This document shows positions 1 through 33,000 of a stretch of 33,000 nt of DNA, in pieces. The translations under genes were made by a program, and so were the position numbers. The stretch is taken from sequence record PP355768.1; one strand, given 5' to 3'. Numbering within the stretch: the first letter of the stretch is position 1; every line of letters begins with the position of its first letter. The notes beneath the pieces are model-generated. The model searched no databases. It was given only the letters and a program-made list of their open reading frames with translations, and was not told the origin of the DNA.

Positions 1-1
1 C

Positions 2-262
2 ATATTTCGTAATTATCGCAAATATTTCGACACTGTAGCAGAAAACTATCTTTTACAAACATATTACATAAGTGGAGCTCCTAGACCAGAAGAATTAGCA
101 TATATTCTTTATGGAAATAGTCAGCTGTACTGGATTCTTTTAATGTGTAATAACGTATATGACCCGTTTAGAGATTGGATTAAAACCCAGGATGCATGCT
201 ATCAATTTGCACAACAAAAATATGCAGATGTAGGTGGAGACCAAATACTCTATCACGTGGAT
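2..262 (+). pseudogene. 53: Baseplate wedge protein gp53, internal fragment (5' end outside the window, 3' end replaced at a junction)
   Basis: Frame 2 reads IFRNYRKYF..YYISGAPRPEELAYILYGNSQLYWILLMCNNVYDPF..KYADVGGDQILYHVD, matching T4 gp53 motifs (PRPEELA, LYWVLLM, GGDQIVYHV). Not in the ORF track because it has no start codon. Confidence 0.9.
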
Positions 263-316
263 GACTTTGTTAAATCCGGTCTGTCTAAATTAATGAAAGA
301 AATAAACAACTTTTAA
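263..316 (+). pseudogene. rnh: RNase H, last ~17 codons, joined in frame to the gp53 fragment
   Basis: FVKSGLSKLMKEINNF* matches the T4 RNase H C-terminus. It is followed by dsbA-33-59-32, the T4 gene order. Confidence 0.85.
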
Positions 317-326
317 GGTGAATATA

Positions 327-599
327 ATGGCTAAGAAAGAAAAAGAGCAAGTAGTATTTGATGAAGCAGTACACGGACAGGCTCTGCGAGATATGATTAA
401 GGAAGCCTCAGGTAATAAGCTAAAAGCAGAAAGCTATCTTGAGCTTAACAAAGACATTAAAGACCGCGCCAAGAAAGAGCTTGGTGTAGAAGGCAAATTA
501 TTTAATCAGCTGCTTGCCCTGTTCCATAAAGGTACACGCGATCGTTACGAAACTGAAAAGGACGAAGTGGTAGAAGCTTATGACTCTATTTTCGCTTAA
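327..599 (+). CDS. dsbA: Double-stranded DNA-binding protein DsbA
   Basis: MAKKEKEQVVFDEAVHG..ELGVEGKLFNQLLALFHK resembles T4 DsbA; lies between rnh and 33; ATG at 327. Confidence 0.92.
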   Translation: MAKKEKEQVVFDEAVHGQALRDMIKEASGNKLKAESYLELNKDIKDRAKKELGVEGKLFNQLLALFHKGTRDRYETEKDEVVEAYDSIFA

Positions 600-879
600 A
601 GATGAGGGGGACACATCCCCCTCCGAATCCATTAACCAGCTGCTAGATAAGCAAGCTAATGGATTTGCTATCGAATCTATGGTAACAGAACTTGGAATGG
701 GGTATCTCGAGGCAACGACACAATGGCTAGAAGAAAATTCTATTCCTGAGGGAAACTTCAGTAGATATATTCCACCTGCAATCATAGAAAAAATTATGTC
801 AGAAGCGTTAGAAGAAAATATGCTTCGACCATCATTTAGTCAAACACATAAAACGAATAGTCTGGATTTTTTATTATGA
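580..879 (+). CDS. 33: Late transcription co-activator gp33
   Basis: GMGYLEATTQWLEENSIPE..KTNSLDFLL, typical gp33 core and acidic-hydrophobic DFLL tail. Confidence 0.93.
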   Translation: MTLFSLKDEGDTSPSESINQLLDKQANGFAIESMVTELGMGYLEATTQWLEENSIPEGNFSRYIPPAIIEKIMSEALEENMLRPSFSQTHKTNSLDFLL

Positions 880-1259
880 TTCGTCTACGCATGCCCCAAA
901 ACAATAATAGATACGTTAACGGTAAGAGCGTTTATCTTTTATATTTAATGAATATTTACTACTTTGCTAAGAAAGTTAATGTAGATAAGCTTCATGATAT
1001 TTTTGAATATAATGAGAAAGTCGGAACATCTTATGTGTTCAAACTTCTTCAGTCAAACGTTATATCTTTCGAGACATTCATCATGCTTGACTCGTTTTTA
1101 GATATAATAAATACACATGATACTGCAACGGATAACTTAGTTTGGAGTAATTACTCCACTAAATTAAAAGCTTATAAAAAACTTTTAAACGTTGACGGTG
1201 CTGAAGCTAAGAAACTCTTTATTAGCATAATCAAATCTTGTAAAGAAATTAGTATATAA
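876..1259 (+). pseudogene. 59: Helicase loader gp59 with an in-frame internal deletion of ~90 aa
   Basis: The N-terminus (MIRLRMP..GKSVYLLYLM) is joined at ~950/951 directly to the C-terminal part (NIYYFAKKV..FKLLQSNVISFETF). 127 aa versus 217 aa for T4 gp59. Confidence 0.88.
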
Positions 1260-1269
1260 TTAATCTATC

Positions 1270-1297
1270 GTCCAGTTGCAAGGACCCATGTTGCAAC
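1270..1297 (+). promoter_or_regulatory. H-type RNA pseudoknot in the gene 32 leader (autogenous translational operator)
   Basis: GTCC(1270-73) A GTTGCAA(1275-81) GGAC(1282-85) CCATG TTGCAAC(1291-97): two interlocking stems with a 1-nt loop 1, followed by an A/T-rich tract up to the ATG. Same architecture as the T2/T4 gene 32 pseudoknot. Confidence 0.85.
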
Positions 1298-1326
1298 AAC
1301 AACTGTTAAATTAAAAAGGTAATCAT

Positions 1327-2013
1327 ATGTTCAAGCGTAAAAATCCTGCTCAACTTCAACAACAACTGGCTGGTCTGAAAGGTGGTTCTTCTTTCTCTAA
1401 CGAAGATAAAAACGAATGGAAACTGAAGACCGATAATGCTGGTAACGGTCAAGCAGTAATTCGCTTCCTGCCTGGTAAAGCTGAATATAAGCTTCTGAAA
1501 CGTAAAACTTCTTTCTGGTCTAACATCCTGGTTATTAAAGACCCGGCTAACCCAGAAAACGAAGGCAAAGTATTCAAATTCCGTTTCGGTCAGAAAATTA
1601 TGGACAAAATCAACGCGATGGTTGAAGTCGATGTTGATATGGGTGAAACTCCGGTTGATGTAACTTGTGTGTATGAAGGTGCAAACTTCGTCATGAAAGT
1701 TAAGAAAGTCGGTGGTTTCCAGAACTATGATGAATGTAAATTCCTTGGTCAGTCCGAGATTGCAAACATCAATGATGAAGAAACTCAGAAATTCCTGACC
1801 GAAAATATGGCTGACCTCAGCGAAATTGTGGCTCCATCTCAGTTTAAATCGTTTGAAGTTAACGAAGCCAAATTTAAACAGATTATGGGTACAGCAGCTC
1901 TTGGTGGTGCCGCGGCCAAAGCAGCAGCCCAAGCCGATAAAATTGGTGATGACCTGGATTCCTTTGACAAAGACCTGTCTGATTTTGAATCCAAACCGAC
2001 CTCTTCTCGTTAG
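1327..2013 (+). pseudogene. 32: Single-stranded DNA-binding protein gp32, with the zinc-binding subdomain deleted in frame and the acidic C-tail truncated
   Basis: [18 protein letters not shown] is joined at ~1479 to [13 protein letters not shown]; the His/Cys Zn-ligand region of T4 gp32 is absent. Ends at ..KPTSSR* where the gene 7 block begins (~2010). Confidence 0.92.
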
Positions 2014-3649
2014 CATAGAAATCATTCTTGCGTGCTTCAAAGAAACGGACGACAGCGTCACGAGCGTCTTTACTCAGATAAATGTTGCGTTTATAAACTT
2101 CTGACCACAGATATTCCCATGCATTTTCTTCGCGAGGATATTTGTTCTTAACAAGATTAACGAGACTGTTGTAATGTGTTCCATTTCCATCCGAAAGGAA
2201 TTGGAGATAGTACTTACAAAAGTGCTCAAAATTACTATCTTGTAGCAAGTAACTATCCGGCATCATTTTAGTAAGATACGGACGTAAATCTGGGTCACGT
2301 AAGCCTGGAGTATGTTCAGGAGTCCAATCTTCTTCACGGGTTTGGTTCTGCAGAAACGCCTTAAACATTACATCAGTTGGTTTCCAGTTAAGCGTTACCT
2401 GGTCACGAACACGATAATCGAATGCATAATAACCTATCAGCTTTCCATCTGGCTCGTGAAACATGATACCAGAAGCATACTGCAAAAATCCGTTAAATGA
2501 AACCGGAGGGCAATAAAACGTTGCGTCGCCTTTATCCCACACTTCCGAAAGAATGCGCTCGGTAGTTCCCTGTGCTGCTGTATCTACTCTTTTCTGATAA
2601 AGAATATCATTATAAATGACAACTGCATGGTCAGCTGTACTTATCCAGCATCTGTTGCCTTCACGAGCCATCCAGACAAACCAAGGTTCAGCATAAAACC
2701 TCATAGGTCCAGGAACAAATGTTTCCCATCTTGAAAATTCATCTGCTCTGAAACTCATCATGTGATAATGCTTATCAGAGTGATACTGAATTGGGTTAAC
2801 ATTTTTAACTGCGGTAGAAATTAGTTCTGGATATTTCGTCTCAAGCTCAATATCCTGAGCGTACTCTGTTGTCTTAAAATTAGCTGATGAAAAGAATATT
2901 TCCTTTCCGTCAGTTGACATAGAAGTCCATAAATGCTCTATACGACGTTTTTCTTCATCTGTATTACCGAATACACGTTTCCATGTATTTGTGTCTTCTT
3001 GATAAACATAGACGCCTTTAGTAGCAGAATCCACAACATTCCGTGGGTCTGTTGGGTCTAATCCTAAGGTTTTAACTTCCCCGGTAATAAGGGCAAAGAT
3101 TTTGCCTCCAACGGAATCCATTTTAAAGCATACAGATTTAGGATTGCCTGTTATATGAGATGCTTCTTTTTCGAACACCTTTTCACCAAATGTAGGGCTT
3201 AAAGGGTCAGTATCTATTGGAGCATCTTTTAATTTAACTTTACGGACAGTGTCTTTTGCAACAACATACAAATAGTCGTCATTGCAGGTAAACGCTTCAG
3301 CATATTTGGTAACGTCAGCAGGCAATGATGCATACGTTCCGAATAACTCTACTTCAAAGCCAAGCTTTAACTGGTCTCCCAATTTAGCAAATGTAACTTC
3401 GTTATCGCTGAACTTAACCTCGTTTGATGACCAGCGCACGTCAGATGATTTCCTTCCGTAAAAGATTTTATCATATCCTAAAACATAAGAAGTAGTTTTA
3501 GATTGATAAATGACTACTCGTGAAACCGGATTTCCGACACGGTCATTAAATAACTGAACGTATTGCCAATTCTGTCCTTTATCATTTGATACTTTAACCA
3601 TATGTTGGAATCTTTCAAACAGATACAAAATTCCGTCTATTTCTCCGAT
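2011..3649 (-). pseudogene. 7: Baseplate wedge initiator gp7, central fragment
   Basis: ILYLFERFQ..KVSNDKG..DPDLRP..WEYLWSEVYKRNIYL..RFFEARKNDFYA matches T4 gp7. The ORF-track tail after DFYA is read-through into the antisense of gene 32. Confidence 0.92.
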
Positions 3650-3693
3650 AGCTTATGAATTCGTAAGCTGGTGACGAACGGTGCAATTGTCAT
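3646..3693 (-). pseudogene. 7: gp7 first ~16 codons, out of frame with the central fragment
   Basis: The ATG at 3693 overlaps the gp6 stop (ATGA). It reads MTIAPFVTSLRIHKLS (T4: MTVKAPSVTSLRISKLS), then jumps ~170 codons ahead in another frame. Confidence 0.85.
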
Positions 3694-3900
3694 TGAGTAA
3701 TAGGCTCCAATTTAATAGTTGTGTATTGAGGACGAAGGTCATTCTCAAATACGATAAGTGTTCCATCGCGGGCGAAGACGATATCCTGGGTAGGAGTAGA
3801 ATAAAGCTCAATACTCTGGTCTTCAAACTGAAGAGGATCGGCTCCAATAGCTCCAAGGCTCCAGTAAATATTATCACCATAATAATCTACTTCACCGATT
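3690..3900 (-). pseudogene. 6: Baseplate wedge gp6, C-terminal fragment
   Basis: KIGEVDYYGDNIYW..IELYSTPTQDIVFARDGTLIVFENDLRPQYTTIKLEPITQ* matches the T4 gp6 C-terminus; not in the ORF track. Confidence 0.88.
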
Positions 3901-4108
3901 TTTTGAAATTAGTACGAATAGCTTCATCAACAGAGTTATCAATGATTTCATCAATCAGTTTGATAATACCAGGAACATACTTTACTGATTGGAATTTACC
4001 AAAAAGAAAACGGTCATGCGCTTCAAACGCAGAACTACCAATGTACATTCCGCTACGCTTAATGATATGTTCTCGGTCACTCAGAATTTTAATTTCGTTC
4101 TTAATCAT
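3901..4108 (-). pseudogene. 39: DNA topoisomerase II large subunit gp39, N-terminal ~70 codons
   Basis: MIKNEIKILSDREHIIKRSGMYIGSS..KLIDEIIDNSVDE (GHKL ATPase start). Broken in a T6 run at ~3900. Confidence 0.93.
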
Positions 4109-4138
4109 TACATTTCCTCGGTTAGTGAAGGAATTATA

Positions 4139-4507
4139 TCAACTATTGATTATAGCAAGTAATTCTTCTTTGATATACATCAATTTACCAAGAACCTCAT
4201 GGCCTCCTTTAACCGCTTTATACTCTGGGTATCGTGGCCGCTGTCGTTCAAACATAGTCCATTGAGCATCACTAACGTTAGCGTATGCATATCGAGAATT
4301 TCCGTAGTACTGTTCAATCCGGTACTCGTTGTTTTCATTAAGTGAAATCCACTCTTCACAGACCTCATAATATTTCTGCATCCAAATAGTACGACCATTC
4401 ACGTCATTGATTGGCCACCAAGCAAACCTGTATTTTCCAATAGCCCGCTCTACCATTTTTAACTGTCGTTTAGCACGCCTTTGCGCAGTTGTCATTCCAA
4501 TAATCAT
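4139..4507 (-). CDS. Hypothetical early protein
   Basis: 122-aa ORF with a GAGGAG RBS, downstream of an early-type promoter; no family recognised. Confidence 0.7.
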   Translation of the reverse strand: MIIGMTTAQRRAKRQLKMVERAIGKYRFAWWPINDVNGRTIWMQKYYEVCEEWISLNENNEYRIEQYYGNSRYAYANVSDAQWTMFERQRPRYPEYKAVKGGHEVLGKLMYIKEELLAIINS

Positions 4508-4533
4508 AATATTCTCCTCTGGCCAACAAGACT

Positions 4534-4563
4534 ATAATACCAAAACACGATGTCCATGTAAAC
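4534..4563 (-). promoter_or_regulatory. T4-type early promoter
   Basis: Minus strand reads GTTTAC (4563-4558) .. TGG TATTAT (4539-4534), upstream of the 4507 ORF. Confidence 0.7.
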
Positions 4564-4567
4564 AACT

Positions 4568-4587
4568 AAATGACCCGAAGGTCATTT
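4568..4587 (-). terminator. UUCG-tetraloop hairpin, likely intrinsic terminator
   Basis: AAATGACC TTCG GGTCATTT immediately after the 39.1 stop. Confidence 0.7.
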
Positions 4588-4834
4588 ATTCATAACGAAT
4601 TGTGCTGTTCTTGAGAAAAAGCCCTGAGCACACCGTTCCGTTAACAGGTTTTCCTGTTGGCCCAATAGCCGTAAAGCCTGTGTGCTGAAAATCATCCTCT
4701 GAGCAAGAAAAGAACTTATATCCAGTGATTTTGATATCAGTAAATCCCGCGTTATCTAACACGCGAGTTGCGTTATCAGCGTCAGTGCATCCAATCATCA
4801 TGAAGGCAAGCGCTGTAATTAAAATCTTTTTCAT
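4586..4834 (-). CDS. 39.1: gp39.1-like lipoprotein
   Basis: Signal peptide with lipobox (MIGC), then TDADNAT..FQHTGF.AIGPTG..GTVCSGLF as in T4 39.1. Confidence 0.85.
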   Translation of the reverse strand: MKKILITALAFMMIGCTDADNATRVLDNAGFTDIKITGYKFFSCSEDDFQHTGFTAIGPTGKPVNGTVCSGLFLKNSTIRYE

Positions 4835-4920
4835 TTTAATTTAACCCTATAAGTTATATTACCTACTTTAATAACCCGGATTTCTCCGGGTTTCATGGTA
4901 ATGCGTGCTTTAGTTCCCAT
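4831..4920 (-). CDS. 29-aa micro-ORF (MGTKARITMKPGEIRVIKVGNITYRVKLK)
   Basis: Its start overlaps the 39.2 stop (TGATG) and its stop overlaps the 39.1 start (ATGA), consistent with translational coupling at both ends. Confidence 0.6.
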   Translation of the reverse strand: MGTKARITMKPGEIRVIKVGNITYRVKLK

Positions 4921-5096
4921 CAATAATCACCGCTCTTTAATCCATCGTAGTGAACTGCCGGTGCAGAAACTACTCGCTTCATTTGACCTTCACACTTAGG
5001 GTTAAAGCAGTTAACAGTGTAGTCACGATGAGAAATTTTACGCATAATTTCTATCTTTTTTCCACAGACTTCACACTTGTAATCATACATTGGCAT
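4920..5096 (-). CDS. 39.2: FmdB-like zinc-ribbon protein (gp39.2-like)
   Basis: MPMYDYKCEVCG..C.NPKC..MKRVVSAP; two CxxC-type pairs. Confidence 0.85.
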   Translation of the reverse strand: MPMYDYKCEVCGKKIEIMRKISHRDYTVNCFNPKCEGQMKRVVSAPAVHYDGLKSGDY

Positions 5097-5418
5097 TAAC
5101 AGCATCCTTCCATTTTTGTGTTTTGACTACGATTTGCTCATTCAGCGCACGAGTAACCATCATGGAGATTTCATCATCTGATACATGCGCATCATCTTTA
5201 TGACGATTTCTGAAATGAAGCCAAAGTGCATCTACTACACAGTTAATAACATCTGCGCACTCGCCTTCAAACTCTTCTTTCTGCCGCCATGGACGATTAA
5301 TCCAATCACACATTTCTCCAGTTTCTGAAGAAAGTTGCAGCATGACATTCCCAATGCTACGATTAGGAATAGGATAAGACAGTTTTGATGCTTCAAAAAT
5401 AGGAGCTAAATTTAACAT
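5083..5418 (-). CDS. MazG-like nucleotide pyrophosphohydrolase (putative)
   Basis: Helical protein with SSETGEMC (ExxE) and EGECADV (ExxD) motifs of all-alpha NTP pyrophosphatases. Confidence 0.6.
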   Translation of the reverse strand: MLNLAPIFEASKLSYPIPNRSIGNVMLQLSSETGEMCDWINRPWRQKEEFEGECADVINCVVDALWLHFRNRHKDDAHVSDDEISMMVTRALNEQIVVKTQKWKDAVNANV

Positions 5419-5777
5419 TGATATGCACTCTGCAGTGCTGCAATAGCAGCGATTGCTTGACCACGGTTATGAATAGAAAGATTCATAACCAAATCGGTTG
5501 GAATTACATTCGCAGAAGTTCCAACTTCAGTAAAGTATTTGAATTCGCTATCAAAAATTACAAGGTCTTCACCGCCGACTTCATCGCATTCTGTGCCATT
5601 AGCCCACATAATTCCGGATACTCTATTATTTTGGTAGTCAACTTTAGTAACAGTAAAACTCCCGCCATTTTCATAGAGTTCAAACACAAAGTCTTCATTA
5701 ACCTCATAGCGTGAAGAAAATTCTTCTTCAGCTTCATCATTGACGAATTTGTACTGTACGCCTTCTTTAAAATTCAT
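5412..5777 (-). CDS. goF: GoF (comC-alpha)-like mRNA metabolism modulator
   Basis: N-terminal F.EG..YKF..EEEF and C-terminal L.IHNRGQAIAAI..LQ pattern; lies next to cef as in T4. Confidence 0.6.
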   Translation of the reverse strand: MNFKEGVQYKFVNDEAEEEFSSRYEVNEDFVFELYENGGSFTVTKVDYQNNRVSGIMWANGTECDEVGGEDLVIFDSEFKYFTEVGTSANVIPTDLVMNLSIHNRGQAIAAIAALQSAYQC

Positions 5778-5992
5778 TACACAATCTCCATGTATTCTGG
5801 GCCATCAACTGTGATTACACGAGCAAAGGTACGAACTGGGACAATATCACCATGGTTCGCGAATACATACAACCAGGTCCAATGCTCTTCTTTACCGAAG
5901 GTTTTCTCTTTCTGAACGACGATTAAGTCCGGGTTGAACAGAATGTCTTCAAAAGCTTCGGCAGTAATTTTTACGGTGTTTTCAGTTTTCAT
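5777..5992 (-). CDS. cef: Cef, modifier of suppressor tRNAs
   Basis: MKTENT..EAFEDILFNPDLIVVQKE..YVF resembles T4 Cef. True start at 5992 with a GAGGAG RBS; the ORF-track extension is gene 23 antisense. Confidence 0.8.
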   Translation of the reverse strand: MKTENTVKITAEAFEDILFNPDLIVVQKEKTFGKEEHWTWLYVFANHGDIVPVRTFARVITVDGPEYMEIV

Positions 5993-6036
5993 GTTATTCT
6001 CCTCAGTAGTTGATAAGATAATAGTACCACATCCTT

Positions 6037-6813
6037 CGTCAGCTGAAAGCACAGTATTCAATCGAACTGGCTCAGGACCTCCGCGCTGTTCACGGTATGG
6101 ACGCTGATGCTGAACTGAGTTCAATCCTGGCTACTGAAATTATGCTGGAAATCAACCGTGAAGTTGTTGACTGGATTAACTACTCCGCTCAGGTTGGTAA
6201 ATCTGGTATGACCCAGACTGTTGGTTCTAAAGCCGGTGTATTCGACTTCCAAGACCCGATTGATATCCGCGGTGCTCGTTGGGCAGGTGAAAGCTTTAAA
6301 GCTCTGCTGTTCCAGATTGACAAAGAATCCGCTGAAATCGCTCGTCAGACCGGTCGCGGTGAAGGTAACTTCATTATCGCTTCCCGTAACGTAGTTAACG
6401 TACTGGCAGCTGTTGATACCAACGTATCTCCGGCAGCTCAGGGTCTGGGTCGTGGTTATAATACCGACACCACTAAAGCAGTATTTGCTGGTGTTCTGGG
6501 TGGTCGCTACCGTGTATACATCGACCAGTATGCTCGTCAGGATTACTTCACCATCGGTTATAAAGGTGCTAACGAAATGGATGCTGGTATCTACTATGCT
6601 CCGTATGTTGCACTGACCCCGCTGCGTGGTTCCGATCCGAAGAACTTCCAACCGGTCATGGGGTTCAAAACCCGTTACGGTATCGGTATTAACCCGTTCG
6701 CCGATTCTGCTGCTCAACAGCCGAAAGGTCGTATTACCTCTGGTATGCCTTCTATCGTCAACTCTGTTGGTAAGAATGCTTACTTCCGTCGTGTATGGGT
6801 TAAAGGTATCTAA
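6037..6813 (+). pseudogene. 23: Major capsid protein gp23, C-terminal half only
   Basis: RQLKAQYSIELAQDLRAVHGMDADAELSSILATEIMLEINREVV..KTRYGIGINPF..YFRRVWVKGI. Begins at a junction (~6036) that cuts the cef promoter region. Confidence 0.96.
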
Positions 6814-6822
6814 TACCAATAA

Positions 6823-6843
6823 GGGAGCCTTCGGGCTCCCTTT
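6823..6843 (+). terminator. Intrinsic terminator after gene 23
   Basis: GGGAGCC TTCG GGCTCCC TTT. Confidence 0.88.
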
Positions 6844-6858
6844 AGTTGTTTTAATGGA

Positions 6859-6866
6859 TATAAATA
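6859..6866 (+). promoter_or_regulatory. T4 late (gp55) promoter
   Basis: TATAAATA upstream of gene 24. Confidence 0.85.
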
Positions 6867-6894
6867 AACTTATAAATCCACAGAGGAAAGCGCA

Positions 6895-8052: not shown

Positions 8053-8054
8053 TT

Positions 8055-8312
8055 CAAGTTAGCTGTTCCAATAAAGCTTTCGTATAAAGCAGTATTACTA
8101 AATTGCTGTATGTAAAGCGTGTTATATGCTAATAAGTCTAATAGCACGTTTAAACGCGAACCAGCAAAATCAAAGTCCTGAAACTCTTTTTGACCGCTAA
8201 GCCAGTTAATAAGCTGATTTTTAATTTCGTCGAATGTTGCTCCAGTAAATGCGTCTGGGATAGCGTTTGCAGTACGCGTTAACTGATAATTTAAAGGTTC
8301 TTTAATAGCCAT
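8055..8312 (-). pseudogene. 6: Baseplate wedge gp6, N-terminal ~86 codons
   Basis: [49 protein letters not shown] overlap with the 5.4 stop; cut next to the gene 24 stop. Confidence 0.92.
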
Positions 8313-9902: not shown

Positions 9903-10925
9903 CTATACCTTCGCATATTTGTCAAGACGTAATTTAGCCATTAAACCTTGCGATATATTTTGATTAATATAATCCGTTATTTCAGAAGCAGTTGCCCCCT
10001 CTTTCATAATCATATCATTTATATCTTTGCTTTTCCAAGGCGACTTATCCCAGAAAACTACCTTTTCGCCAGCATCTACTAAACGTTTCATACGCTTAAT
10101 TGTATCAGGATGACGAGGTTCATGGTCCATAATCCACGCTCGGTTATCATGGCATGGAACTTGAGCTAAATCTAAAGACCCGCCAGTGATTGCAATAGCA
10201 TTATCAATGAACAATGAATCTATTGGTCCTTCCATGACGAATACGAGTTTTGACTCATCAATAGTGTCGAGACCATAAATTTTGGTCGCGTGTTCGTGGG
10301 CTTTGATTGTGATGTATTTTTGTGGAGCATTCTTTCGTAGTGCTCGTCCTTGAAACGACTCAATCTCTCCTTTCTTGTTGAAGATAGGAATAACCAAACG
10401 TGGTTCGTTCGTCTCATTCTTATAGGTTCCTGGATTAACGGAGTTAACAAGAGAAGGCCATTGGTTAGTAAACCATAACCTTTTCCAAGAAGTGCTTGGA
10501 ATACATCTGGCAGTCACGTATTTAACTATCGGATGTTCCTTAGGAAGTCTATCTAATCTCTCGCAGAAATTAAGTTTTTCTATTACGGGGAGTTTTGCAT
10601 TAATTTTCTCAGACGGTTCTACAGCCTTTGGCTTATCAAAGACCTGCTCCTTTCTTTTCTCAAGAAGATACTCTCGATAGAGGTCAGGTTCATTATCTTT
10701 AAGATACTGTGATAGCCACTTGTTATACTCACAGTTGAAGCAATGACAACGTAATCCTTGGCCTGCATCAAAAATCCAGAATCGGGCTTTATTGATATCT
10801 TTCTGTGAGTCACCACAAATTGGGCAACGGCAGTTTAACTTGAATGTTGAAGATGTAGTAACGTGTCTAAATTTAGGTAGGTGAGATATTGCACGAATTG
10901 CATACTCGTTATCAACCCAAGACAT
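9903..10925 (-). CDS. 61: DNA primase gp61 (appears intact)
   Basis: Zinc-binding RCPICGDS..HCFNC and TOPRIM EGPIDSLF / DHEPR motifs; 340 aa. Confidence 0.96.
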   Translation of the reverse strand: MSWVDNEYAIRAISHLPKFRHVTTSSTFKLNCRCPICGDSQKDINKARFWIFDAGQGLRCHCFNCEYNKWLSQYLKDNEPDLYREYLLEKRKEQVFDKPKAVEPSEKINAKLPVIEKLNFCERLDRLPKEHPIVKYVTARCIPSTSWKRLWFTNQWPSLVNSVNPGTYKNETNEPRLVIPIFNKKGEIESFQGRALRKNAPQKYITIKAHEHATKIYGLDTIDESKLVFVMEGPIDSLFIDNAIAITGGSLDLAQVPCHDNRAWIMDHEPRHPDTIKRMKRLVDAGEKVVFWDKSPWKSKDINDMIMKEGATASEITDYINQNISQGLMAKLRLDKYAKV

Positions 10926-14796: not shown

Positions 14797-15324
14797 CCTC
14801 GGAGAGTATTCCTCCTCGAGGGATTTAAACACTTTCTTATCGTATAGATTAACACATTCTATCCCGTGCCTGCGAGCTATATCAACAGCTACTCTCGTCC
14901 CTCCAGATACACTCCCGCATCTTTTCTCAGGCGCCCAATATAATACCTTATCTACAGGCTCAGTGCATTCTAGGCCCAATACCTGCATAGAATTCCGTGC
15001 GAATAAAGTCTGCACTATCTTCGAGCATTCATCCCAGTACGACGTAACTTCTCTCGCCTTAATGATGCTTTTGATTTTGGCTTCGTTTGATAATTCAGAC
15101 CATACAACAACACCTGTACCAGGAACATGGCCACAAAAGCCAGAATAAGGAATAATCCTACAAGAATTTGACCTATCGTATTTCGCCAACCACGCTTCAT
15201 CTGAACCCGGAGCTCCACCTGAATATGAAAAATGCCCCTCTTCCGAGAGGCGTTGACCTATTGTAGTCATTAGACTCAGAACTCTGCGTGGCGCTTCTCG
15301 TGAACCAATAAGCGCCAATCTCAT
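14797..15324 (-). CDS. SLOG-superfamily (DprA/YpsA-like) protein, last few residues probably lost
   Basis: LIGSR, SGGAPGSD, LFARN and GGT..AV..A....I..VNL motifs of the SLOG Rossmannoid fold. The ORF-track tail after ..EEYSPR is read-through. Confidence 0.75.
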
Positions 15325-16331
15325 TATTCTAAAACCTCATGCCATTTACTACGAATAGTGTTTTGAATTAAAGTAGTGATTTCTTTCTTAACAGCAGAAG
15401 GATTATCAGCGAATAGCATGTCATGACCTTCACGTGCTGCTTCGTTAATGATATCTTTCATAGTCAGACCCATAACACGACCGAAATCTTTAGCAGTTAC
15501 AGTACCAATATGAGACAGAACGTTACTTACACGGTTCCAGGTTACATATTCAGAAAAGATTTCCAGAACACGCTTATCATTCTCGGTGAGTTCAACCTTC
15601 GCTTTAATAGGCTTATCGGATTTAGCCTTCTCACTGAACTTAGAGTTCTTACACTTAATAGCAACACGAGTACCATTATTGAAGAACTTAGGATGAACCG
15701 GCTTAAGAACATAGCCTTCAGCTACGCCAGTTTCAGAAGAAGCCTGCGGACCGAACACATGTTTATTTGCGTGTTCAAGGTCAGTCGTGTTAACAAGTTC
15801 ATTATAGTAATTGACAATAGATTTAAAGTCATTTACATACTGAGATAGCTCGGCAAATGAACCTCGACCAAGAAGTGGAGCCAATTTAAGACCAAGACCA
15901 GTAGCAAACGATTCTACTACATAATCGTCCCAATAAACTTTTTCATTACCGGAATCCGACAGGATATCAAATACGTAGAAATCTTTCTCACCATAATCTA
16001 CGCCTTTCTGAATACCACCGCCAGCAAATTCGCCGAAGATTTGAACAGATACTAAATCCATGGCGTTCAGCATGTTCTGCATCTTAACGAAAGAATCCTT
16101 ATATTTCTTCATGATAATATCATGACCAAAGAAACTTTCACTTTCTAAAATAGGTCCAGTACGCTTAGCCGGAACGATTTCGGTAGGAGTAATAATCACA
16201 CTGAAGTTAGTGCCATGAATCTTCTCACGAGCCACCCACTCAACAGTATGCATATCAAAACCAGCACCGCGAATCTTCTCGATGAACTTACCGTTGTAAT
16301 GATTCTCAAGACTAGAATATTTTGCAAACAT
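15324..16331 (-). CDS. rnlB: RNA ligase 2 (appears intact)
   Basis: KYSSLENHY, motif I EKIHGTNFS, GEFAG, EGYVLKP and AIKCKNSKFSEK; 335 aa. Confidence 0.96.
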   Translation of the reverse strand: MFAKYSSLENHYNGKFIEKIRGAGFDMHTVEWVAREKIHGTNFSVIITPTEIVPAKRTGPILESESFFGHDIIMKKYKDSFVKMQNMLNAMDLVSVQIFGEFAGGGIQKGVDYGEKDFYVFDILSDSGNEKVYWDDYVVESFATGLGLKLAPLLGRGSFAELSQYVNDFKSIVNYYNELVNTTDLEHANKHVFGPQASSETGVAEGYVLKPVHPKFFNNGTRVAIKCKNSKFSEKAKSDKPIKAKVELTENDKRVLEIFSEYVTWNRVSNVLSHIGTVTAKDFGRVMGLTMKDIINEAAREGHDMLFADNPSAVKKEITTLIQNTIRSKWHEVLE

Positions 16332-16966: not shown

Positions 16967-17791
16967 ATGTTTGGACATTGGTATAATTCGTCCTTACGCC
17001 GATACATTGTATTGCTTGGAGATTTATTTTCTCATGTACAAATTGCTCGTTGGCGTGAAGACACTGGACTAAAATATATTAAAGTACCTATCACTTATGC
17101 TTCAAAGGAAAAGTTCCTTTCTCAACTCGGAAAATGGACTGCTGTTCAGTCTACCGAGAATAAAGCAAAGATAGAAACTGTTTTGCCAAGAATGAATTTA
17201 CACTTGGTTGATATGCAATACAACGCGATGTATAAAACATCACAGTTGAATAGAACCAAATCATATAAAACCCCTTCAAAAATTACATCTCAGTATAATC
17301 CTACTCCGATTAAGATGATTTTTGAGTTGGGGATTTATACGCGGAACCAAGATGATATGTATCAAATCATCGAGCAAATCGTTCCTTATTTTCAGCCGCA
17401 TTTTAACACGACTATAACTGAACTTTACGACAAAGACACAAGTTTTAACCGTGATGTTAGAATTGTATTACAGTCATTTTCTCCGGATGAAGCTGTTGAT
17501 GGAGATAATATCACTCGTCGTAGATTAGAATGGTCGCTGATGTTTGAAGTCAATGGATGGTTATATCCTCCTGTTGCCGAAGTTGACGGCGAAATTAGAA
17601 CCATTTATTTAGATTTCTTCGCTAACAGCAAAGAGTTAACACCAGAAGGAAATTTTGAATCTGTGGATAGCGAAGTTACTCCACGTGATGTCCAGCACGA
17701 AAATTGGGATGGTTCTAGCAAACAGACGTATTCTCACGATATTCCTATTCCGGTAAATCCGGAGGCTCCTGGACCGAGAGGTGAAAAATGA
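16967..17791 (+). CDS. 15: Tail sheath stabiliser/terminator gp15 (appears intact)
   Basis: [49 protein letters not shown]; AGGAGA RBS. Confidence 0.95.
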
Positions 17792-24549: not shown

Positions 24550-24559
24550 GATAATTATA

Positions 24560-25009
24560 TTACTGATTATTTATAGCATTTCTCAAACGATAGAGTTGAT
24601 TACAGAATTCACGCTCAGTCAAAATCGTTTCAGAAATTTTATTTTTGCCCATGCTGTGAGTGAGCGTAGCATTCCGGGTAGCAGCCAAAGCTTTTCTGAA
24701 TCCTTCATTTTTACTAAGTGCATCGTATGCTCCTGTTAGTAAATTCTGATACGCTTCTGAGGCACGGTGAATAGGAACACCTTTCCAATAAAGGGTTTGT
24801 GTTGGCCACCAACGTTTCTTCTTACCTTTAAACTTAGCGGACTTTCCGACTAGTGTACATACATGTGCTTGCATTTCAGGCGAAGAAAATTTGAGGGATT
24901 GCAAGAATCCCTCCATTGATGCACATTCTACGCCATCATAGATAAATTTATGAGGAGCGAAATTACTCAAAGCACATGATGGATATGAACTACCTGAACC
25001 AATATCCAT
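24560..25009 (-). CDS. NADAR/YbiA-family protein (gp30.3-like)
   Basis: PSCALSNFAP..DG..SMEGFLQSLK..LYWKG..ALAATR..LTHSMG..ILTEREF; start at 25009 via TAATG overlap. Confidence 0.8.
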   Translation of the reverse strand: MDIGSGSSYPSCALSNFAPHKFIYDGVECASMEGFLQSLKFSSPEMQAHVCTLVGKSAKFKGKKKRWWPTQTLYWKGVPIHRASEAYQNLLTGAYDALSKNEGFRKALAATRNATLTHSMGKNKISETILTEREFCNQLYRLRNAINNQ

Positions 25010-25490
25010 TACTTTTCCTTCACGTATTTCAACCAATCAACTTTTAATGGGCTTTCTTTCTGATTATACGTAATTCCAACATGGAATGCAACTGGAGCAT
25101 CAGGAATACGAATTTCTTCTTCAATGTTGAAGATTTCTACTTTCTCAAATACTCGCATGAAATCATAGTCATATTCAATTGGATTACCCAACCAAGCCTG
25201 AATAGCATACATAACTTCATTTGAACAAGAATAGTGGTTATCTAAATAAGCATCAAACTCTTCGTCTGTGCAATCATATGCAGGAACATCAACGCCAAAG
25301 AATTTCTTGGAAAATTCAGGAGTTACATACTTCTGTTCAGTGTGAAGTCTTTCAAGAACTGCTTCATGATTATAATCAGCATTTCCCATATACACACGAT
25401 CAGCATCGTTTTCCCAAGTGGTAATTGCCATTGCTAAGCCTTTAGGAATAACTTGTCCAAATTTAAGTAACTCTAAAAAATCGCATTGAA
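25009..25490 (-). pseudogene. Acidic hypothetical protein, N-terminus truncated
   Basis: The frame stays open upstream of the ORF-track ATG (IQCDFLELLKFGQVIPKGLAM..) up to the junction at ~25490. Confidence 0.55.
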
Positions 25491-26039
25491 TACACTAACT
25501 ATGATGAACCAAATCAGAAAAATATGCGTCCTGTCGCTGACGATATTATGATTAAAGTCAATAATATTGCAGCATTTTTTGACGTAATTTATCCGATTGG
25601 CACGATTTATGAAAACGCTCACAACCACGCAAACCCTGCTGACTATATGGGATTTGGGGTGTGGAAGCTTTATTCACAAGGCCGTGTTACTGCTGGTTGG
25701 AATAATGATTCATCTGATCCTTATTTTTCGCGTAACAACAATAACTTAAACGAAAACGGACAACCATCGTTAACAGCAGGTGGAACGGTTGGTGATTTGA
25801 CGTTTACATTAGGAAAAGAACACATTCCTGAGTTAATGTCAAGGGACAAAGTTCTAATTTCAGACCCTGAACATGGCAGCGTAGTTATTGGCGGATGTCA
25901 ATTAGACCCAGACGCACAAGGTCCAGGTTATTCTAAATACCGTGAAGACACTGTTGCAGTAAACAATGGTGTAGTTCCAAATGACATCACTAAAATTCAG
26001 CCAACAATCACCGTTTATCGTTGGATTAGGGTAGGTTAA
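25491..26039 (+). pseudogene. 10: Baseplate wedge/tail pin gp10, C-terminal fragment
   Basis: YPIGTIYENA..NPA.YMGFG.WKL..GWN..GGCQ.DPD..QPTITVYRWIRVG. Confidence 0.93.
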
Positions 26040-26040
26040 A

Positions 26041-26574
26041 ATGACTATTGAAACTAAAACTCGTGAAGGAGCTAAAGTTAATTCAAGATTAACTGCTTTT
26101 TCAGAATATCGTGTAGACCCGCAGAATATCGCGGTGGGAAATAAGGCTCCTATAGGGAGCCTAACCTTTGAACAAATGGATTTAGGAGTTTGGTATCCAA
26201 ATACTGAAGCTGCTATTAATGATTTGATGTCATTACAGTCAGCAGAAATTGGAACTATTATTTGTAATGACACCGGAATATCTCCACAACCAGCACAGCA
26301 AATTACACGCGCTACTTTTTCAGGCGTAGTTTCGTTAGAACCTAAAGAAGACGGCTCTGTCGGTGACCCAGTAATAATTCATATTCTTGGCTTACCAATT
26401 AGAATTGCGAATGGTGATGACTTTGCTGCAGTAGCTACCAGGTGGTATGATAAAGTAAAAGAATTAGAAGCTGTTGGAAAAGTGGTTCAACAAGTTACTC
26501 AATCACCTGCAACTCCTCAATATGTTGATATTATTCATTTAGATTATCAGAACCATAATTTTGAAACATATAAA
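26041..26574 (+). pseudogene. 11: Baseplate wedge/short-fibre connector gp11, C-terminus missing
   Basis: SRLTAF.EY..VG..PIGS..G..YPN..AINDL; follows gene 10. Reads through in frame into 57A. Confidence 0.85.
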
Positions 26575-26592
26575 AATATTAGGAATTCAAAA

Positions 26593-27790
<1,198 letters not shown>

Positions 27791-28509
27791 AATTTTTCAT
27801 CTTTAAAATTTCTTATCATTGACGCATAATCTACATCTGGATATCCAATATTATAAACTTCTTTTCTGAAAGCCTTTCTACCTGGGCAATTTAGCCATTT
27901 CCATATATCAAAAAGCTCATCATAATAATTCCAATGCGGATACTTCCGCTGCGAGATTTTCTGCCCTTTTGACATTTTAAGTTTGGTTTCTTTAGATACA
28001 GTGTGTCCAATTTTTGCTAAACTTAAATTTTTACGATGTGATTTTGTAAAAATTTTTATTTTCCCAGATTCACTCATTTTCTTTCTAGTTTCAAGTGAAA
28101 CGAAAGATTTAGAATGCTTAATAGCTTGTACATGAGTAATAGAAAGTTTTCTACCAGAAAGAGAATCACTTATTTTATTTTTATGTAAATCGGAAAGTTT
28201 TCGTTCTTTCATAGCGTTGCTAAATTTTAATTTAGCACTTTGATATCCGTGCGAAGATACATATCTATTGGTATTATTTCCATTGCACATTTTCCAAAAC
28301 GCGAATATCATTTTATTACTATCATAAACCTTAGTCAATAACCAATGAGCAATGAAATGCTCTCTAGCTGTTAATTTAACTAAATTTGATTTTAAATCAG
28401 TTCCTCCTAAAGATTTTGGAATAACATGATGTATTTCTGTATATCCAGATAAATCTGAGCGGGTTTTTGCCCGCTCAATAAGTTGAAAATAGATTTTTCT
28501 ATAATTCAA
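27791..28509 (-). mobile_element. Free-standing HNH homing endonuclease (MobE-like) with NUMOD3-type repeats
   Basis: EIHHVIPKSLGG..NLVKLTAREHFIAH HNH motif; repeated S.ETRKKMS / LSDLHKNKIS motifs; markedly AT-rich; TTG start abuts the regA stop. Confidence 0.88.
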
Positions 28510-28779
28510 TTAACACCCTATCGTATATTTGGATTTAAGAGTCCATTCATTCTTGCTTTTGAATGAAATAACTCTAAAATTATTCTGCATTTCATGTAGA
28601 GTTTGCCCTCTATTGATGATAAGCAATCCCCACTGTTCCAGTAATTGGGCAATAGAATCACGGCGAGCAATGTCTTCTAAATCAATTGTTACTGGACGTC
28701 CATCAAGTTTAAGCATCTCTTTGAAGTGGACAATATAGTATCGTCCTTGTTTCTGAAGAATATGACATGATTGATAAAT
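28510..28779 (-). pseudogene. regA: Translational repressor RegA, N-terminal ~31 aa missing
   Basis: YQSCHILQKQGRYYIVHFKEML.LDGR..RRDSIAQLL..NNFRVISFK..KYTIG. Confidence 0.94.
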
Positions 28780-28784
28780 ATATA

Positions 28785-28999
28785 TTAATAGCAAAGGCCT
28801 GACCAAACTTAGCATTTAAAGTAGTTCCAGTAGGGCTAGCTTTAAAAGTTTTCCATGCACCTGCTGCGAATGGAACTGAACCATCACCTAACTCTGAATA
28901 TAAATCATCAAAGTTGTTATTAATTTTAAGACCACCTTTACGGAGGTAATCACCAGACCCATCATCTACTGATTGGCCTACTATCAAATTTTGTTTCAT
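28785..28999 (-). pseudogene. 10: gp10, N-terminal fragment
   Basis: MKQNL.VG..VDDGSGDYLRKGGLKINNNFDDLY.ELGDG.VPF.AGAWKT. Confidence 0.93.
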
Positions 29000-29580
29000 T
29001 ATTGAGATACCCCTACGGTCTGTGTAGCAATAACTTTAACTGCCAAACGTGCGTTTCCATAAGATGTTGAAGCTGTGCATATTAAATCTTTCTGCGCGTT
29101 AATAGAGTATGAAATAGAATACATCTTTTCATTTTCAGATGATTCACCGCTTCTTAACACTGCATATTCAGTGTCAAATACTCTTCCGTTTGGCGCTGAT
29201 GAAGTAATAGTCGGGTCAATCATAAGCATGACTTCAGATGATTGCCTTTTGATGGTTTGACCACCTGGATTTGCGCTGAAGCTTAATAACAATTTAACAG
29301 TAGAGTAATCATCGTTATATCCAAGCCGAATATTAATAGGAGAACTCGTTAAATTATATGTAGCTTCTAACGGCGAATATGTGCTGCCAAACATACTTGA
29401 AATTGAATAATCCCAAACTGCAGCACCGTTAGCTTTGACTTCAACACACCACAATTCAATTCTACATCTTGGCGTGTTGATAATCAACTCTCGCGATCCA
29501 TCTTTAAATGCATCTGCTACACCTTCGCCGTTTGTTGTTATTTTTATGGGTCTAGCTTTTGATGCTGAGCCATTACTATT
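28999..29580 (-). pseudogene. 9: Baseplate wedge tail fibre connector gp9, C-terminal fragment
   Basis: NSNGS..VWDYSISSMFG..KLL..EYAVLR.G..RLAVKVIATQTVGVSQ; TAATG overlap with gene 10. Confidence 0.9.
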
Positions 29581-29581
29581 T

Positions 29582-30364
29582 GGTGTTTGGGTATTCAAAG
29601 ATGATATTACAGTTGACGGTGTAGCTGCTAAAATTGAAGTTGTTGAATCCGTTGATGAAATGAAAGAGCGTATCAAGAAACGCTTTAACGTCATGGGATT
29701 AATGACTAACGGCTTAGTTCATGGGAATATTCGTTCTCTGATTATTTCCGGAGCAGCAGGTATCGGTAAGACTTACTCTTTGGATAAAGCATTACAACAT
29801 GCTCATGATACTAACGCTATTGATTACAAATCAGTGAACGGTAAAATCTCAGGAATTGGTTTATACTGCCGTCTTTGGGAATCACGTGAAGCAAATTCAG
29901 TTCTGCTCATTGATGATGTAGATGTATTCTCTGATATGGACATTCTTAACCTTCTGAAAGCTGCTTTGGATTCAGGAGAGAAACGTAAAGTATGCTGGAG
30001 TACTGCATCTTCTTTCTTGGAGGATAAAGGAATTCCTAATGAGTTTGAGTTTGAAGGTACTGTAGTCTTTATCACTAACGTTGATATTGACCGTGAATTA
30101 GAGCGCGGTTCTAAACTTGCTCCACATCTTCAAGCTCTGGTATCACGTTCGGTTTATCTTGACCTTGGTGTTCACACTAATGAAGAGATTATGGTCCGAG
30201 TTCAAGATGTAATAATGACTACTTCTATGTTACAGAACCGTGGGTTAAGAAATTCCGAAGTTATTGAAGTTTTGGAATTTATGAAAGATAACGTAAACCG
30301 TCTGCGTAACGTATCTCTCCGTACCGCACTTTATATTGGTGATTTCGTCGCGACTGACCGTAAA
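29582..30364 (+). pseudogene. nrdC.10: nrdC.10-like AAA+ ATPase, both ends truncated
   Basis: GVWVFK..RFNVMG..Walker A SGAAGIGKT, Walker B LLIDDVD, APHLQALVSRS, LRNVSLRTALY. Confidence 0.88.
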
Positions 30365-30691
30365 ATTAACGTTCGTCGTCTGTTTAACATGCTGAAGAAC
30401 AACATCGGTGATTCTTCTAAGTGGCAGCTGTTCGAGTTAAACGATAACTTTACCCGTTCTTCTTTCCGTATGGAAACAAGCCAATACTTGGCGGGTATTA
30501 AAGCTCTGGGTGGTGTATATGACTTCCGAGTTGTATGTGATACCACGAATAACACTCCAGCAGTTATCGACCGCAACGAGTTTGTAGCGAGCTTCTACAT
30601 CAAGCCGGCACGTTCAATTAACTATATCACTCTGAACTTCGTTGCTACGGAAACTGGCGCAGATTTTGATGAGTTAATCGGACCACAGTAA
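30365..30691 (+). pseudogene. 18: Tail sheath protein gp18, C-terminal ~108 aa, fused in frame to the ATPase
   Basis: INVRRLFNMLK..FELND.FTRSSFR..VCDTTNNTP.VIDRNEFVA.FYIKPARSINYITLNFVAT. Confidence 0.95.
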
Positions 30692-30794
30692 TATGAACCC
30701 CAGGACATTCTGGGGTCATCTAACCTTTAGATGATAAATTATATTACCGCACACTTTAATAGCCTCTACGATGATGTAGTCAATCGAGAGGCTA

Positions 30795-30802
30795 TATAAA
30801 TA
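30795..30802 (+). promoter_or_regulatory. T4 late promoter for gene 19
   Basis: TATAAATA upstream of gene 19. Confidence 0.85.
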
Positions 30803-30818
30803 TCTATAGGAAACAACG

Positions 30819-31175
30819 ATGGAATTAACAGACATCACTCGTGCGTTTGAATCTGGTGACTTTGCACGTCCTAACCTGTTTGAGGTAGAAATTCCTTATC
30901 TGGGTCGTAACTTCAGTTTCAAATGTAAAGCAGCACCGATGCCGGCAGGTATCGTAGAAAAAGTTCCAGTCGGGTACATGAACCGTAAGATTAACGTCGC
31001 CGGTGACCGTACTTATGACGACTGGACTGTTACCATCTATAACGATGATAAACATGAAGTACGTAAGGCAATTATTGCTTGGCAGGCTCAGGCCCACGCC
31101 CAAGGCAATGATATCTCTGGTATGACTCCAGCTGATTACAAAAAGGTTGCTACTGTACGCCAGTTTAGTCGTGAT
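30819..31175 (+). pseudogene. 19: Tail tube protein gp19, C-terminal ~40 aa missing
   Basis: DITRAFESGDFARPNLFEVEI..NRKINVAGDRTYDDWTVT..VRQFSRD, then a break. Confidence 0.95.
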
Positions 31176-31299
31176 TTGTGCACAAATTTTCAAATAATTT
31201 TAGGGAATCTGGAAGGACTTTATGGAGGGTAGAATGGATTTATACAGCTTGGTATATAGAAATGCCCAGACGACCTCTAGAAGGCATCTGGGCTATAAA

Positions 31300-31833
31300 T
31301 TACAGTTTCTTATAATGGCGACCAACATCACCAACGTAGTGTGTCAGTTGCTTCAAACGATTACCGAAATCTTCTGTTTTAGAACTAGTGCTTAAACCAT
31401 ACAGTACTGCATATAAATCAGGGGTATCACGTACGTTAACTTTAGATGCGATTGACGGGTCAACAGATGCAACTACTTTTGCATGGAGTTTAGCAGATAA
31501 TGCCGCAGCTTTTTCGTATGCAGTGTGAACATCATCCCATGCTTTATTCAGTGCTTTAACATCAGCGTCGCTAAGAACAGATGACTTTTTAGCAGCTTTA
31601 GGTTTAGCAGTGCCTGACTTTGGTTTAGTAAAAATTTCACCAGTTACAACCATTGATTTCCATGCGTTTGTAACATCGTTGCCGCGGAATCCAAGTTCTT
31701 TCATATCACGTGCGAATTGGAATCGTGATTCATCGGAAGTATCTTTGTATGAGTATTTTCCAGCTTCCATAGCTGATATAGCCGCAGCTTTAACATCAGA
31801 AGAAGCTTCTATTAAAAATTCTTTAAATTTCAT
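31300..31833 (-). CDS. Putative internal head protein (capsid-targeting-like N-terminus)
   Basis: MKFKEFLIEA start, Lys/Ala-rich, downstream of a late promoter. Confidence 0.6.
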   Translation of the reverse strand: MKFKEFLIEASSDVKAAAISAMEAGKYSYKDTSDESRFQFARDMKELGFRGNDVTNAWKSMVVTGEIFTKPKSGTAKPKAAKKSSVLSDADVKALNKAWDDVHTAYEKAAALSAKLHAKVVASVDPSIASKVNVRDTPDLYAVLYGLSTSSKTEDFGNRLKQLTHYVGDVGRHYKKL

Positions 31834-31868
31834 TATAATTCCCTAAGTAATAGTGTCGATTGCTATAC

Positions 31869-31876
31869 TATTTATA
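31869..31876 (-). promoter_or_regulatory. T4 late promoter
   Basis: TATAAATA on the minus strand, ~35 nt upstream of the 31833 ATG. Confidence 0.8.
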
Positions 31877-31878
31877 CT

Positions 31879-31900
31879 AAAAAGCCCCGTCCGAAGACGG
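31879..31900 (-). terminator. UUCG terminator, 5' arm apparently clipped by a junction
   Basis: CCGTC TTCG GACGG GGC TTTTT; the extra GGC has no partner arm. Confidence 0.6.
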
Positions 31901-31957
31901 CTATTATAGGTGACTTCCACTCACTTGATAAGGGTTCGATTCCCTTTGGATGCTCCA
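31899..31957 (+). tRNA. tRNA-Gly(TCC), 5'-truncated
   Basis: Anticodon arm GGTGA-CTTCCAC-TCACT, T arm AAGGG-TTCGATT-CCCTT, 3' acceptor strand TGGATGC-T-CCA. The 5' acceptor strand and most of the D arm are absent. Confidence 0.85.
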
Positions 31958-32004
31958 AATTGTGACTCGTCGAGAGACGCTCGGTTCTTTTAATAGGAAC
32001 TGAT

Positions 32005-32651
32005 ATGCATTACTATCTTTATAAAATTACAAATAAAATAAATCAAAAGTTTTATATTGGAGTTCATTCTACTTCTAAGTTGGAAGATGGATACATGGGT
32101 TCTGGTAAGAATTTAAAGCGTGCTATTAAAAAGTACGGCAAAGAAAATTTTGAAAAAGAAATTCTCGAAACTTTTGATAATGCTAAAGATATGTATGATG
32201 CGGAAAGACACCTAGTAAATGAAGAATTTATTAAAAGGCCTGATACATATAACTTAAAGCTTGGTGGTGAAGGCGGATGGGACCACATATGTAATAATGA
32301 AATCTTGTCCGAACAACGAAGAACTAATATGTCAAAAGTTGGAAAATCTTGTGCTAATAAACCTTTATCAGATGAGCATAAGAAAAAGATTTCAAAATCA
32401 GTGAAATCCTTGGATTTACCTACATGGAAAGATAATATGGCTGGTAAGCCAAGCGGATTTGCAGGAAAACACCATTCGGCTGAATTCAAGAAAAAGATAT
32501 CCGAATTAAACTTAGCTAGAGTTAGTACAGATGAAAGAGCTTACAGAATGGAAATTTCTAAATTATATGATTTTTCTAAAAGAGGCGAATTATCTAAATA
32601 TGCTAAACACATTGGTGTAAGTCACACTCAAGCAAGAAGAATTTTAAATCA
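32005..32651 (+). mobile_element. GIY-YIG homing endonuclease (SegB-like) adjacent to a tRNA gene; end clipped
   Basis: YLYKITN..KFYIGVH..GYMGSG..E..YN GIY-YIG module, NUMOD-like LSDEHKKKIS and HSAEFKKKIS repeats; AT-rich. The ORF-track tail after ARRILN is read-through. Confidence 0.9.
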
Positions 32652-32678
32652 CATATACACCTCATCAGTTAGTAATAG

Positions 32679-32686
32679 TATTTATA
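32679..32686 (-). promoter_or_regulatory. T4 late promoter for a gene of which only the RBS and ATG (32654) remain
   Basis: TATAAATA, then GAGGTG RBS, ATG and an immediate TGA at the junction. Confidence 0.7.
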
Positions 32687-32700
32687 TAAGTATGTGTTAC

Positions 32701-33000
32701 TTAATCCCAAAGCCATTCGCAGATGCCTTGCTCAATAGTTCTAGCACCAGCTTCGTCCCAGTTATATTCTTCGTCATACTTCAATGCGCGTTTAATTTCG
32801 GCTTTATGAAATAAACGCGGAATCGGCATAGCATAACGGGTCCAACGTAGAGTTTTCCAGAATCCATCGCGCTTTGATTTAGCAATCAGTTTCTTGGCCT
32901 CTAGCGGTCTTTCCCGATTTTCAGAAATACGCAGTTCAACATATTTCTGTTGGGTTTCTTTATCTTTCTGAGTTTTAACGTATTCGTTATAGCTTTTAAT
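32701..33000 (-). CDS. vs.8: vs.8-like protein, C-terminal part (runs off the window)
   Basis: KRDGFWKTLRW..IPRLFHKAEIKRALK.D..YNWDEAGAR..E.G..WD*, resembling T4 vs.8; not in the ORF track. Confidence 0.7.
   Translation of the reverse strand: MKSYNEYVKTQKDKETQQKYVELRISENRERPLEAKKLIAKSKRDGFWKTLRWTRYAMPIPRLFHKAEIKRALKYDEEYNWDEAGARTIEQGICEWLWD

Follow-up and report, generated by a model that had tools for sequence, protein, structure and literature searches.

The question raised by this stretch of DNA, 33,000 nucleotides of the Klebsiella phage record PP355768.1 that are called the window below, is whether a run of T4-like gene blocks that stand out of their usual order, many of them inverted, belongs to a rearranged virus or arose in the handling of sequence data. 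The preliminary description, drawn from the letters of the window, had read it as a mosaic of one T4-like genome without any colinear locus, and this was confirmed, as the window resolves into 28 blocks of Jiaodavirus (T4-like) sequence separated by 27 joins. The window does not represent a real biological feature but is an artefact of the data, and no rearranged virus stands behind it. Very probably, a mixed assembly of low coverage yielded contigs or scaffolds that were strung together and then submitted as a single genome.

The origin of the window was established by megablast, in which positions 1-25000 and 25001-33000 were searched as two queries against 50,697 phage records, together with a string comparison in which the window was found to equal positions 197,045-230,044 of PP355768.1 letter for letter. 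Since this arrangement is already that of a public record, the window was not shuffled afterwards. The source record, hereafter K6, is the following.

PP355768.1: Klebsiella phage vB_Kpn_AM_K6, deposited as a "complete genome", 261,044 bp, linear, Straboviridae, Kerala.

Only this record covered both queries completely in a single piece, among 1301 matching phage records for the first query and 380 for the second, and the search for a reference colinear with the whole window thus returned nothing except the source record itself. The other relatives of the window are Jiaodavirus genomes of about 164-170 kb (such as Mineola, the Roth phages and vB_KpnM_17-11), which match it only piecewise, at 97-99.6%. 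Judged from its sequence, which is 96-99% identical to Mineola and to the sister record K5, the T4-like phage in K6 is a Klebsiella Jiaodavirus and not T4 itself. The depositors' annotation of K6 is Prokka-style with nearly every product named "hypothetical protein", and coding sequence (CDS) names such as dnaG_2, thyA_3 and gyrB_2 betray repeated gene fragments.

Joins were called against three references, namely the well annotated and colinear genome of Mineola (NC_055748.1) and the sister records K5 and K4, and a join was defined as a place at which no alignment runs 25 bases across and the flanks are non-colinear on every one of the three. The outcome for the stretch as a whole is as follows.

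1..33000, no strand: whole window, 28 Jiaodavirus (T4-like) blocks of which 26 are whole, 27 sharp joins and 8 colinear gaps inside blocks.

All 27 joins are sharp, with at most 12 unaligned bases and in 26 cases at most 5, and none of them is spanned by K4, K5 or Mineola; with K4 added as a spanning reference, every window join remained unshared and sharp. At each of the 8 colinear gaps, which lie within blocks, the window lacks bases of the reference. Among the 26 whole blocks, the median length is 1147 bases (range 594-2134), and by block size per record bin the window lies where the pasted pieces shrink from about 2.1 kb to about 0.6 kb. The blocks are drawn from seven of the nine 20-kb bins of the reference, 11 lie on the plus strand and 14 on the minus strand, and no reference base is used twice among them. 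The reference position jumps by a median of 35 kb at the joins (range 4-81 kb), which agrees with the earlier view that the blocks stem from regions tens of kilobases apart; orientation changes at 12 of the 23 testable joins, that is, at roughly half of them, as had been estimated; and the order inside the blocks is colinear, with a median ratio of reference span to block length of 1.002, in keeping with the normal gene order that had been described there. Joins and gaps taken together number 6, 4, 4, 3, 6, 8 and 4 in consecutive 5-kb bins of the window, against 6, 4, 4, 3, 6, 6 and 4 in the list of the preliminary description. Almost all of the discontinuities had thus been noticed there, and the figure of about 33 was correct, but by these bin counts about six of its junctions are colinear internal gaps and not relocations. 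The pattern of discontinuities is far beyond chance.

Of the 54 block ends in the window, 42 lie in 36 protein genes, one in a tRNA-Gly gene and one in an annotated terminator, so that joins do cut genes, a terminator and a transfer RNA (tRNA), as had been noticed from the letters; a further six lie outside listed features, and four could not be placed. The gp37-like fibre gene is cut three times by block ends, and gp6, gp7, gp10 and an nrdC.10-like gene are cut twice each. The genes cut once include those for gp5, gp8, gp9, gp11, gp14, gp16, gp18, gp19 and gp23, and likewise gp32, gp34, gp36, gp39, gp53, gp1, gp56 and a 57B-like gene, together with RNase H, regB, rI, tk, vs, a vs.1-like gene, segB, spackle, cef and mrh, a glucosyltransferase gene, a DprA-like gene and two hypothetical genes. 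Seven of the internal gaps could be placed in genes; they remove about 100-500 bases each and affect gp59, gp32, gp7, gp24, gp42/imm, the gp37-like fibre gene and one hypothetical gene. Among the genes earlier listed as broken (23, 6, 7, 8, 10, 18, 19, 32 and 59), all but 59 are indeed cut at block ends, while gp59 is broken by an internal gap and not by a join. ARAGORN found no complete tRNA in the window.

Genes that lie wholly within blocks are intact, and their proteins are 99-100% identical to those of Mineola; the damage is therefore confined to joins and gaps. The primase, RNA ligase 2 and gp15 may serve as examples.

9903..10925, minus strand: DNA primase (T4 gp61 type), depositors' CDS dnaG_2; 340 amino acids without an internal stop, 340/340 identical to Mineola, free of joins and gaps.
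15324..16331, minus strand: RNA ligase 2 type; 335 amino acids, 334/335 identical to Mineola, free of joins and gaps.
16967..17791, plus strand: tail sheath stabiliser (T4 gp15 type); 274 amino acids, 272/274 identical to Mineola, free of joins and gaps.

The meaning of these joins becomes apparent when the record is considered over its full length. From position 1 to about 108.8 kb, K6 has no Jiaodavirus match; the Prokka names in this first part are T5-like (a split NAD ligase, about 30 tRNAs, nrdA/B/D and a sirtuin), and a 20-kb sample of it matches Klebsiella phages of 109-113 kb such as KPN4 at 92-94% identity, with 93-97% of the sample covered. The guanine-plus-cytosine fraction is 0.455 in the first 108.8 kb as against 0.393 in the remainder. 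About 40-42% of K6 is accordingly Sugarlandvirus/Demerecviridae-like, yet the record is filed under Straboviridae. If a single Sugarlandvirus genome and 91% of a 166-kb Jiaodavirus genome are added together, the sum roughly equals the 261 kb of the record.

The remaining 152,255 bases of K6 consist of 154 T4-like blocks with 153 joins and an N50 of 2555 bases. The blocks become smaller along the record, with mean sizes in successive 10-kb bins that fall through 18.9, 4.2, about 3, 2.1, 1.9, 1.3, 0.77, 0.58, 0.29, 0.19 and 0.15 kb; block order and block length are correlated with a Spearman rho of -0.94, and the longest non-increasing subsequence of block lengths takes in 91 of 150 blocks, compared with 36 after shuffling. 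Seventy blocks are shorter than 300 bases, the smallest being of about 77 bases, and the very small pieces form the tail of the record (240-261 kb). This tail also includes about 3.7 kb for which only K4 provides a match, and one stretch of 424 bases that has no counterpart in any of the three references.

Taken together, the K6 blocks cover 91.4% of the Mineola genome, 98% of the covered bases exactly once, and the other 8.6% is absent. The blocks lie on both strands (78 plus, 60 minus), and orientation switches at 72 of 137 joins. Where two blocks of K6 are neighbours in the reference, bases are missing between them in 99 of 137 pairs (median 82 bases), and 12 pairs abut exactly. The joins themselves are tight, with at most 5 unaligned bases at 145 of 153; the record contains no N bases, and the joins of K6 carry no shared word of 4 or 6 bases, restriction site, adaptor, homopolymer or N linker. 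In addition to the joins, 70 colinear discontinuities occur inside the T4-like blocks of K6 (108.8-261 kb), comprising 51 losses, 17 duplications and 2 of equal length. The losses have a median of 318 bases (interquartile range 203-452), and in the duplications 108-320 bases of the reference are present twice. When the segments lacking at the internal gaps were sought elsewhere in K6 as tiny pieces, only 2 of 49 were present.

Two sister records were compared with K6.

K4: PP355766.1, 288,685 bp; T5-like part first, then 158 joins.
K5: PP355767.1, 174,364 bp; few large blocks, then small ones, with tdk_1, tdk_2 and tdk_3 fragments at the ends.

The mean block size of K4 in successive 40-kb bins is 24, 46, 23, 8.4, 4.0, 2.0, 0.56 and 0.18 kb, with a rho of -0.91. 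At 233 of 250 block-end places of K6, the K5 sequence continues without a break, and that of K4 does so at 129. For K5, calling against three references gave a noisy set of 29 joins, of which many are probably K5-specific insertions, and its build was used qualitatively only. Eleven joins of K6 appeared at one point to be common to K4, of which nine proved to be wide unmatched zones tested at their midpoint. One manner of construction thus recurs in the sister records while the joins differ from record to record, which marks the arrangement as an artefact of data handling.

Several accounts of such an arrangement can be weighed against these data. If the joins had been present in physical library molecules, as chimeras formed by ligation or amplification or as chimeric long reads that were assembled as such, abrupt joins and random orientation would be expected, and both are observed, as in ligation chimeras. 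Such molecules would, however, sample the genome with replacement, whereas 98% of the covered bases in K6 occur once and the window blocks have no reference base in common; furthermore, a steady fall of block size along the record is the product of no wet-laboratory process, the joins have no common site, adaptor or microhomology word, and K4 repeats the ordered build with other joins. Because of the once-only coverage and the size gradient, laboratory chimeras are extremely unlikely. The single use of each reference base and the random orientation would be explained equally well if a finished colinear genome had been cut and shuffled in silico, whether by the depositors' pipeline or by whoever prepared the window. 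The latter is contradicted by the identity of the window with a public record, and in either case exact abutment would be expected between pieces that are neighbours in the reference, yet such neighbours mostly have bases missing in between, the record leaves out 8.6% of the reference, and the bases missing at the 51 internal losses almost never turn up in another part of the record. The output list of an assembler is indicated instead by the size ordering and by the T5-like genome at the front. The cutting of a finished genome is thus very unlikely, because of the missing part of the reference, the gaps between neighbours and the internal gaps. Of the causes that the preliminary description had proposed (in-silico shuffling, amplification or ligation chimerism, and misassembly), an assembly artefact is retained in the form of separate pieces pasted together; chimerism falls with the lack of redundant coverage and the shuffling of a finished genome with the lack of perfect abutment.

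A third account takes the DNA to be real, either as a scrambled, helper-dependent or otherwise defective T4-like genome or as a recombinant or hybrid concatemer of T5-like and T4-like phages in the lysate. Nothing speaks for it except the label "complete genome" on the record. The window by itself contains 36 cut protein genes, among them those for major capsid, sheath, tube, baseplate and fibre proteins, and seven more gene regions with gaps. A T4-type head filled by headful packaging takes about 170 kb and not 261 kb; the length of K6 therefore stands against its being a packaged genome of this type. Blocks sorted by size have no biological rationale, and at 233 of the 250 block-end places the relatives, among them K5 as a sister phage of the same laboratory, are colinear; no window join is common to K4. 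Given the cut structural and replication genes, the length and the size ordering, the probability of a real rearranged genome is negligible, and the earlier opinion that a helper-dependent scrambled genome was a far-fetched alternative is upheld by the cut genes, the size-sorted blocks and the colinear relatives.

The pasting of unordered assembly pieces fits the record, because the blocks are ordered roughly by size, each reference base is used once and bases are missing between reference neighbours. On this explanation, the lysate would have held two phages, and a short-read assembly that came out fragmented would have had its list of pieces pasted end to end without spacers. The T5-like phage, presumably deeply sequenced, would have given one piece of 108.8 kb that was placed first, and the T4-like Jiaodavirus, presumably thinly sequenced, would have broken into about 154 pieces. 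These would have been appended roughly by decreasing size and in arbitrary orientation, and the window would correspond to the part of the list that runs from about 2 kb down to about 0.6 kb. The internal losses may represent paired-end scaffold gaps from which the filler was removed, and the internal duplications may represent overlaps that were not merged; from these two features, it was probably scaffolds that were pasted. What is observed directly is the block structure, the size order, the once-only coverage, the lack of bases between reference neighbours and the recurrence of this build in the sister records.

Some points weigh against pasting in this form. The size order is not strict, as a longer block follows a shorter one at 63 of 153 steps, usually by 10-30%, and adding back the bases lacking at internal gaps, in imitation of a scaffold with its filler, barely improves it. 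The internal losses include 24 of 51 whose length is a multiple of three, somewhat more than one third, and a few may be natural in-frame insertions or deletions. Furthermore, the difference in sequencing depth, the assembler, and the person or software that did the pasting are matters that we infer. A strict sorting by length was also tried and rejected; a dynamic programme that required non-increasing lengths kept 41 of 149 joins, which is a fragile measure of an order that is simply not strict. Since the order is imperfect even with the lacking bases restored, the sort key is not plain final length, and it could have been the number of reads, the scaffold length with filler or the assembler's own numbering. 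In the literature searched, no primary description of the phages was found and no mention of the accession that gives an assembly method.

Comparison with known systems leads to the same reading. In content, the window is ordinary DNA of Jiaodavirus (Straboviridae, Tevenvirinae), as represented by Mineola (166,130 bp) and K5: 97.8% of the window and 96.9% of the T4-like part of K6 are matched, the T4-like part is 95.9% identical to Mineola and 98.6% to K5, gene order is that of the genus in every block, and genes inside blocks are intact. The arrangement, by contrast, is unlike that of a natural genome in colinearity, length and completeness of genes, as the blocks of K6 differ in order and orientation, with 153 joins, 70 internal gaps or duplications and 8.6% of the reference absent, and K6 has 261,044 bp with a foreign 108.8 kb in front where a natural genome has about 164-170 kb. 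A multi-contig draft written out as a pseudomolecule resembles K6 in its roughly falling piece size, arbitrary orientation, once-only cover, coverage gaps between pieces, tiny pieces at the end and several organisms in one file; K6 differs from it in that its joins lack N spacers, its size order is approximate and it is labelled as one phage's complete genome. The leading 108.8 kb of K6 resemble Sugarlandvirus (Demerecviridae, T5-like; KPN4, MN101228.1, 108,916 bp), with 93% identity over 95-97% of a 20-kb sample, and have the same genome size; no part of the window belongs there, and this genus is relevant only as proof of two phages in K6. Circular permutation and terminal redundancy of the T4 type can also make two records of one phage look mutually broken, but they produce one apparent breakpoint and no inversions, unlike the 27 joins in 33 kb, half of them inverted, that are found here.

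The joins have also left their mark on the predicted proteins. Twenty-five open reading frames of at least 60 amino acids cross joins of the window, 15 of these being of at least 150 amino acids, and frames that run over joins are artefactual fusions. The corresponding deposited "hypothetical proteins" of the window, which are fusions or truncations, now stand in protein databases. One of the deposited frames is the following.

27172..28509, minus strand: WWS25341.1, open reading frame of 445 amino acids, "hypothetical protein"; an artefactual frame across a join, part of which is a mobD-like homing-endonuclease region.

This mobD-like region adjoins regA in Lion_ER11, Nispero, KLB2 and YP11 (99.0-99.7%), and only part of the WWS25341.1 region matches the homing-endonuclease/regA region of Lion_ER11, Nispero and others, at 99.5-99.7%. 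K6, K4 and some Jiaodavirus genomes possess the mobD-like region, whereas K5 and Mineola do not, a difference that is the ordinary presence or absence of a mobile endonuclease. As the region is found in K6 and not in K5, the T4-like phage of K6 is not K5. A low-GC stretch of 725 bases without a match in K5 or Mineola had been suspected of being foreign, but it proved to be a mobD-like homing-endonuclease region that stands beside regA in other Jiaodavirus genomes and in K4.

Records of this group have already been put to use. A virome paper reports "Klebsiella phage vB_Kpn_AM_K4" as an abundant and differentially abundant species (PMC13589070), and the sister record K3 has been used in a terminase tree (PMC13072308).

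This arrangement calls for no biological explanation, and the value of the finding lies in curation and database hygiene. Two public "complete genomes", K6 of 261 kb and K4 of 289 kb, are paste-ups of two unrelated phages that pass as jumbo phages on length alone and carry a wrong single-family label (Straboviridae), and they feed dozens of truncated or fused "hypothetical proteins" into the databases. Such records distort surveys of genome size, studies of gene order and synteny, protein clustering and the classification of reads, and scans of raw sequence will keep flagging them until they are marked as unordered drafts.

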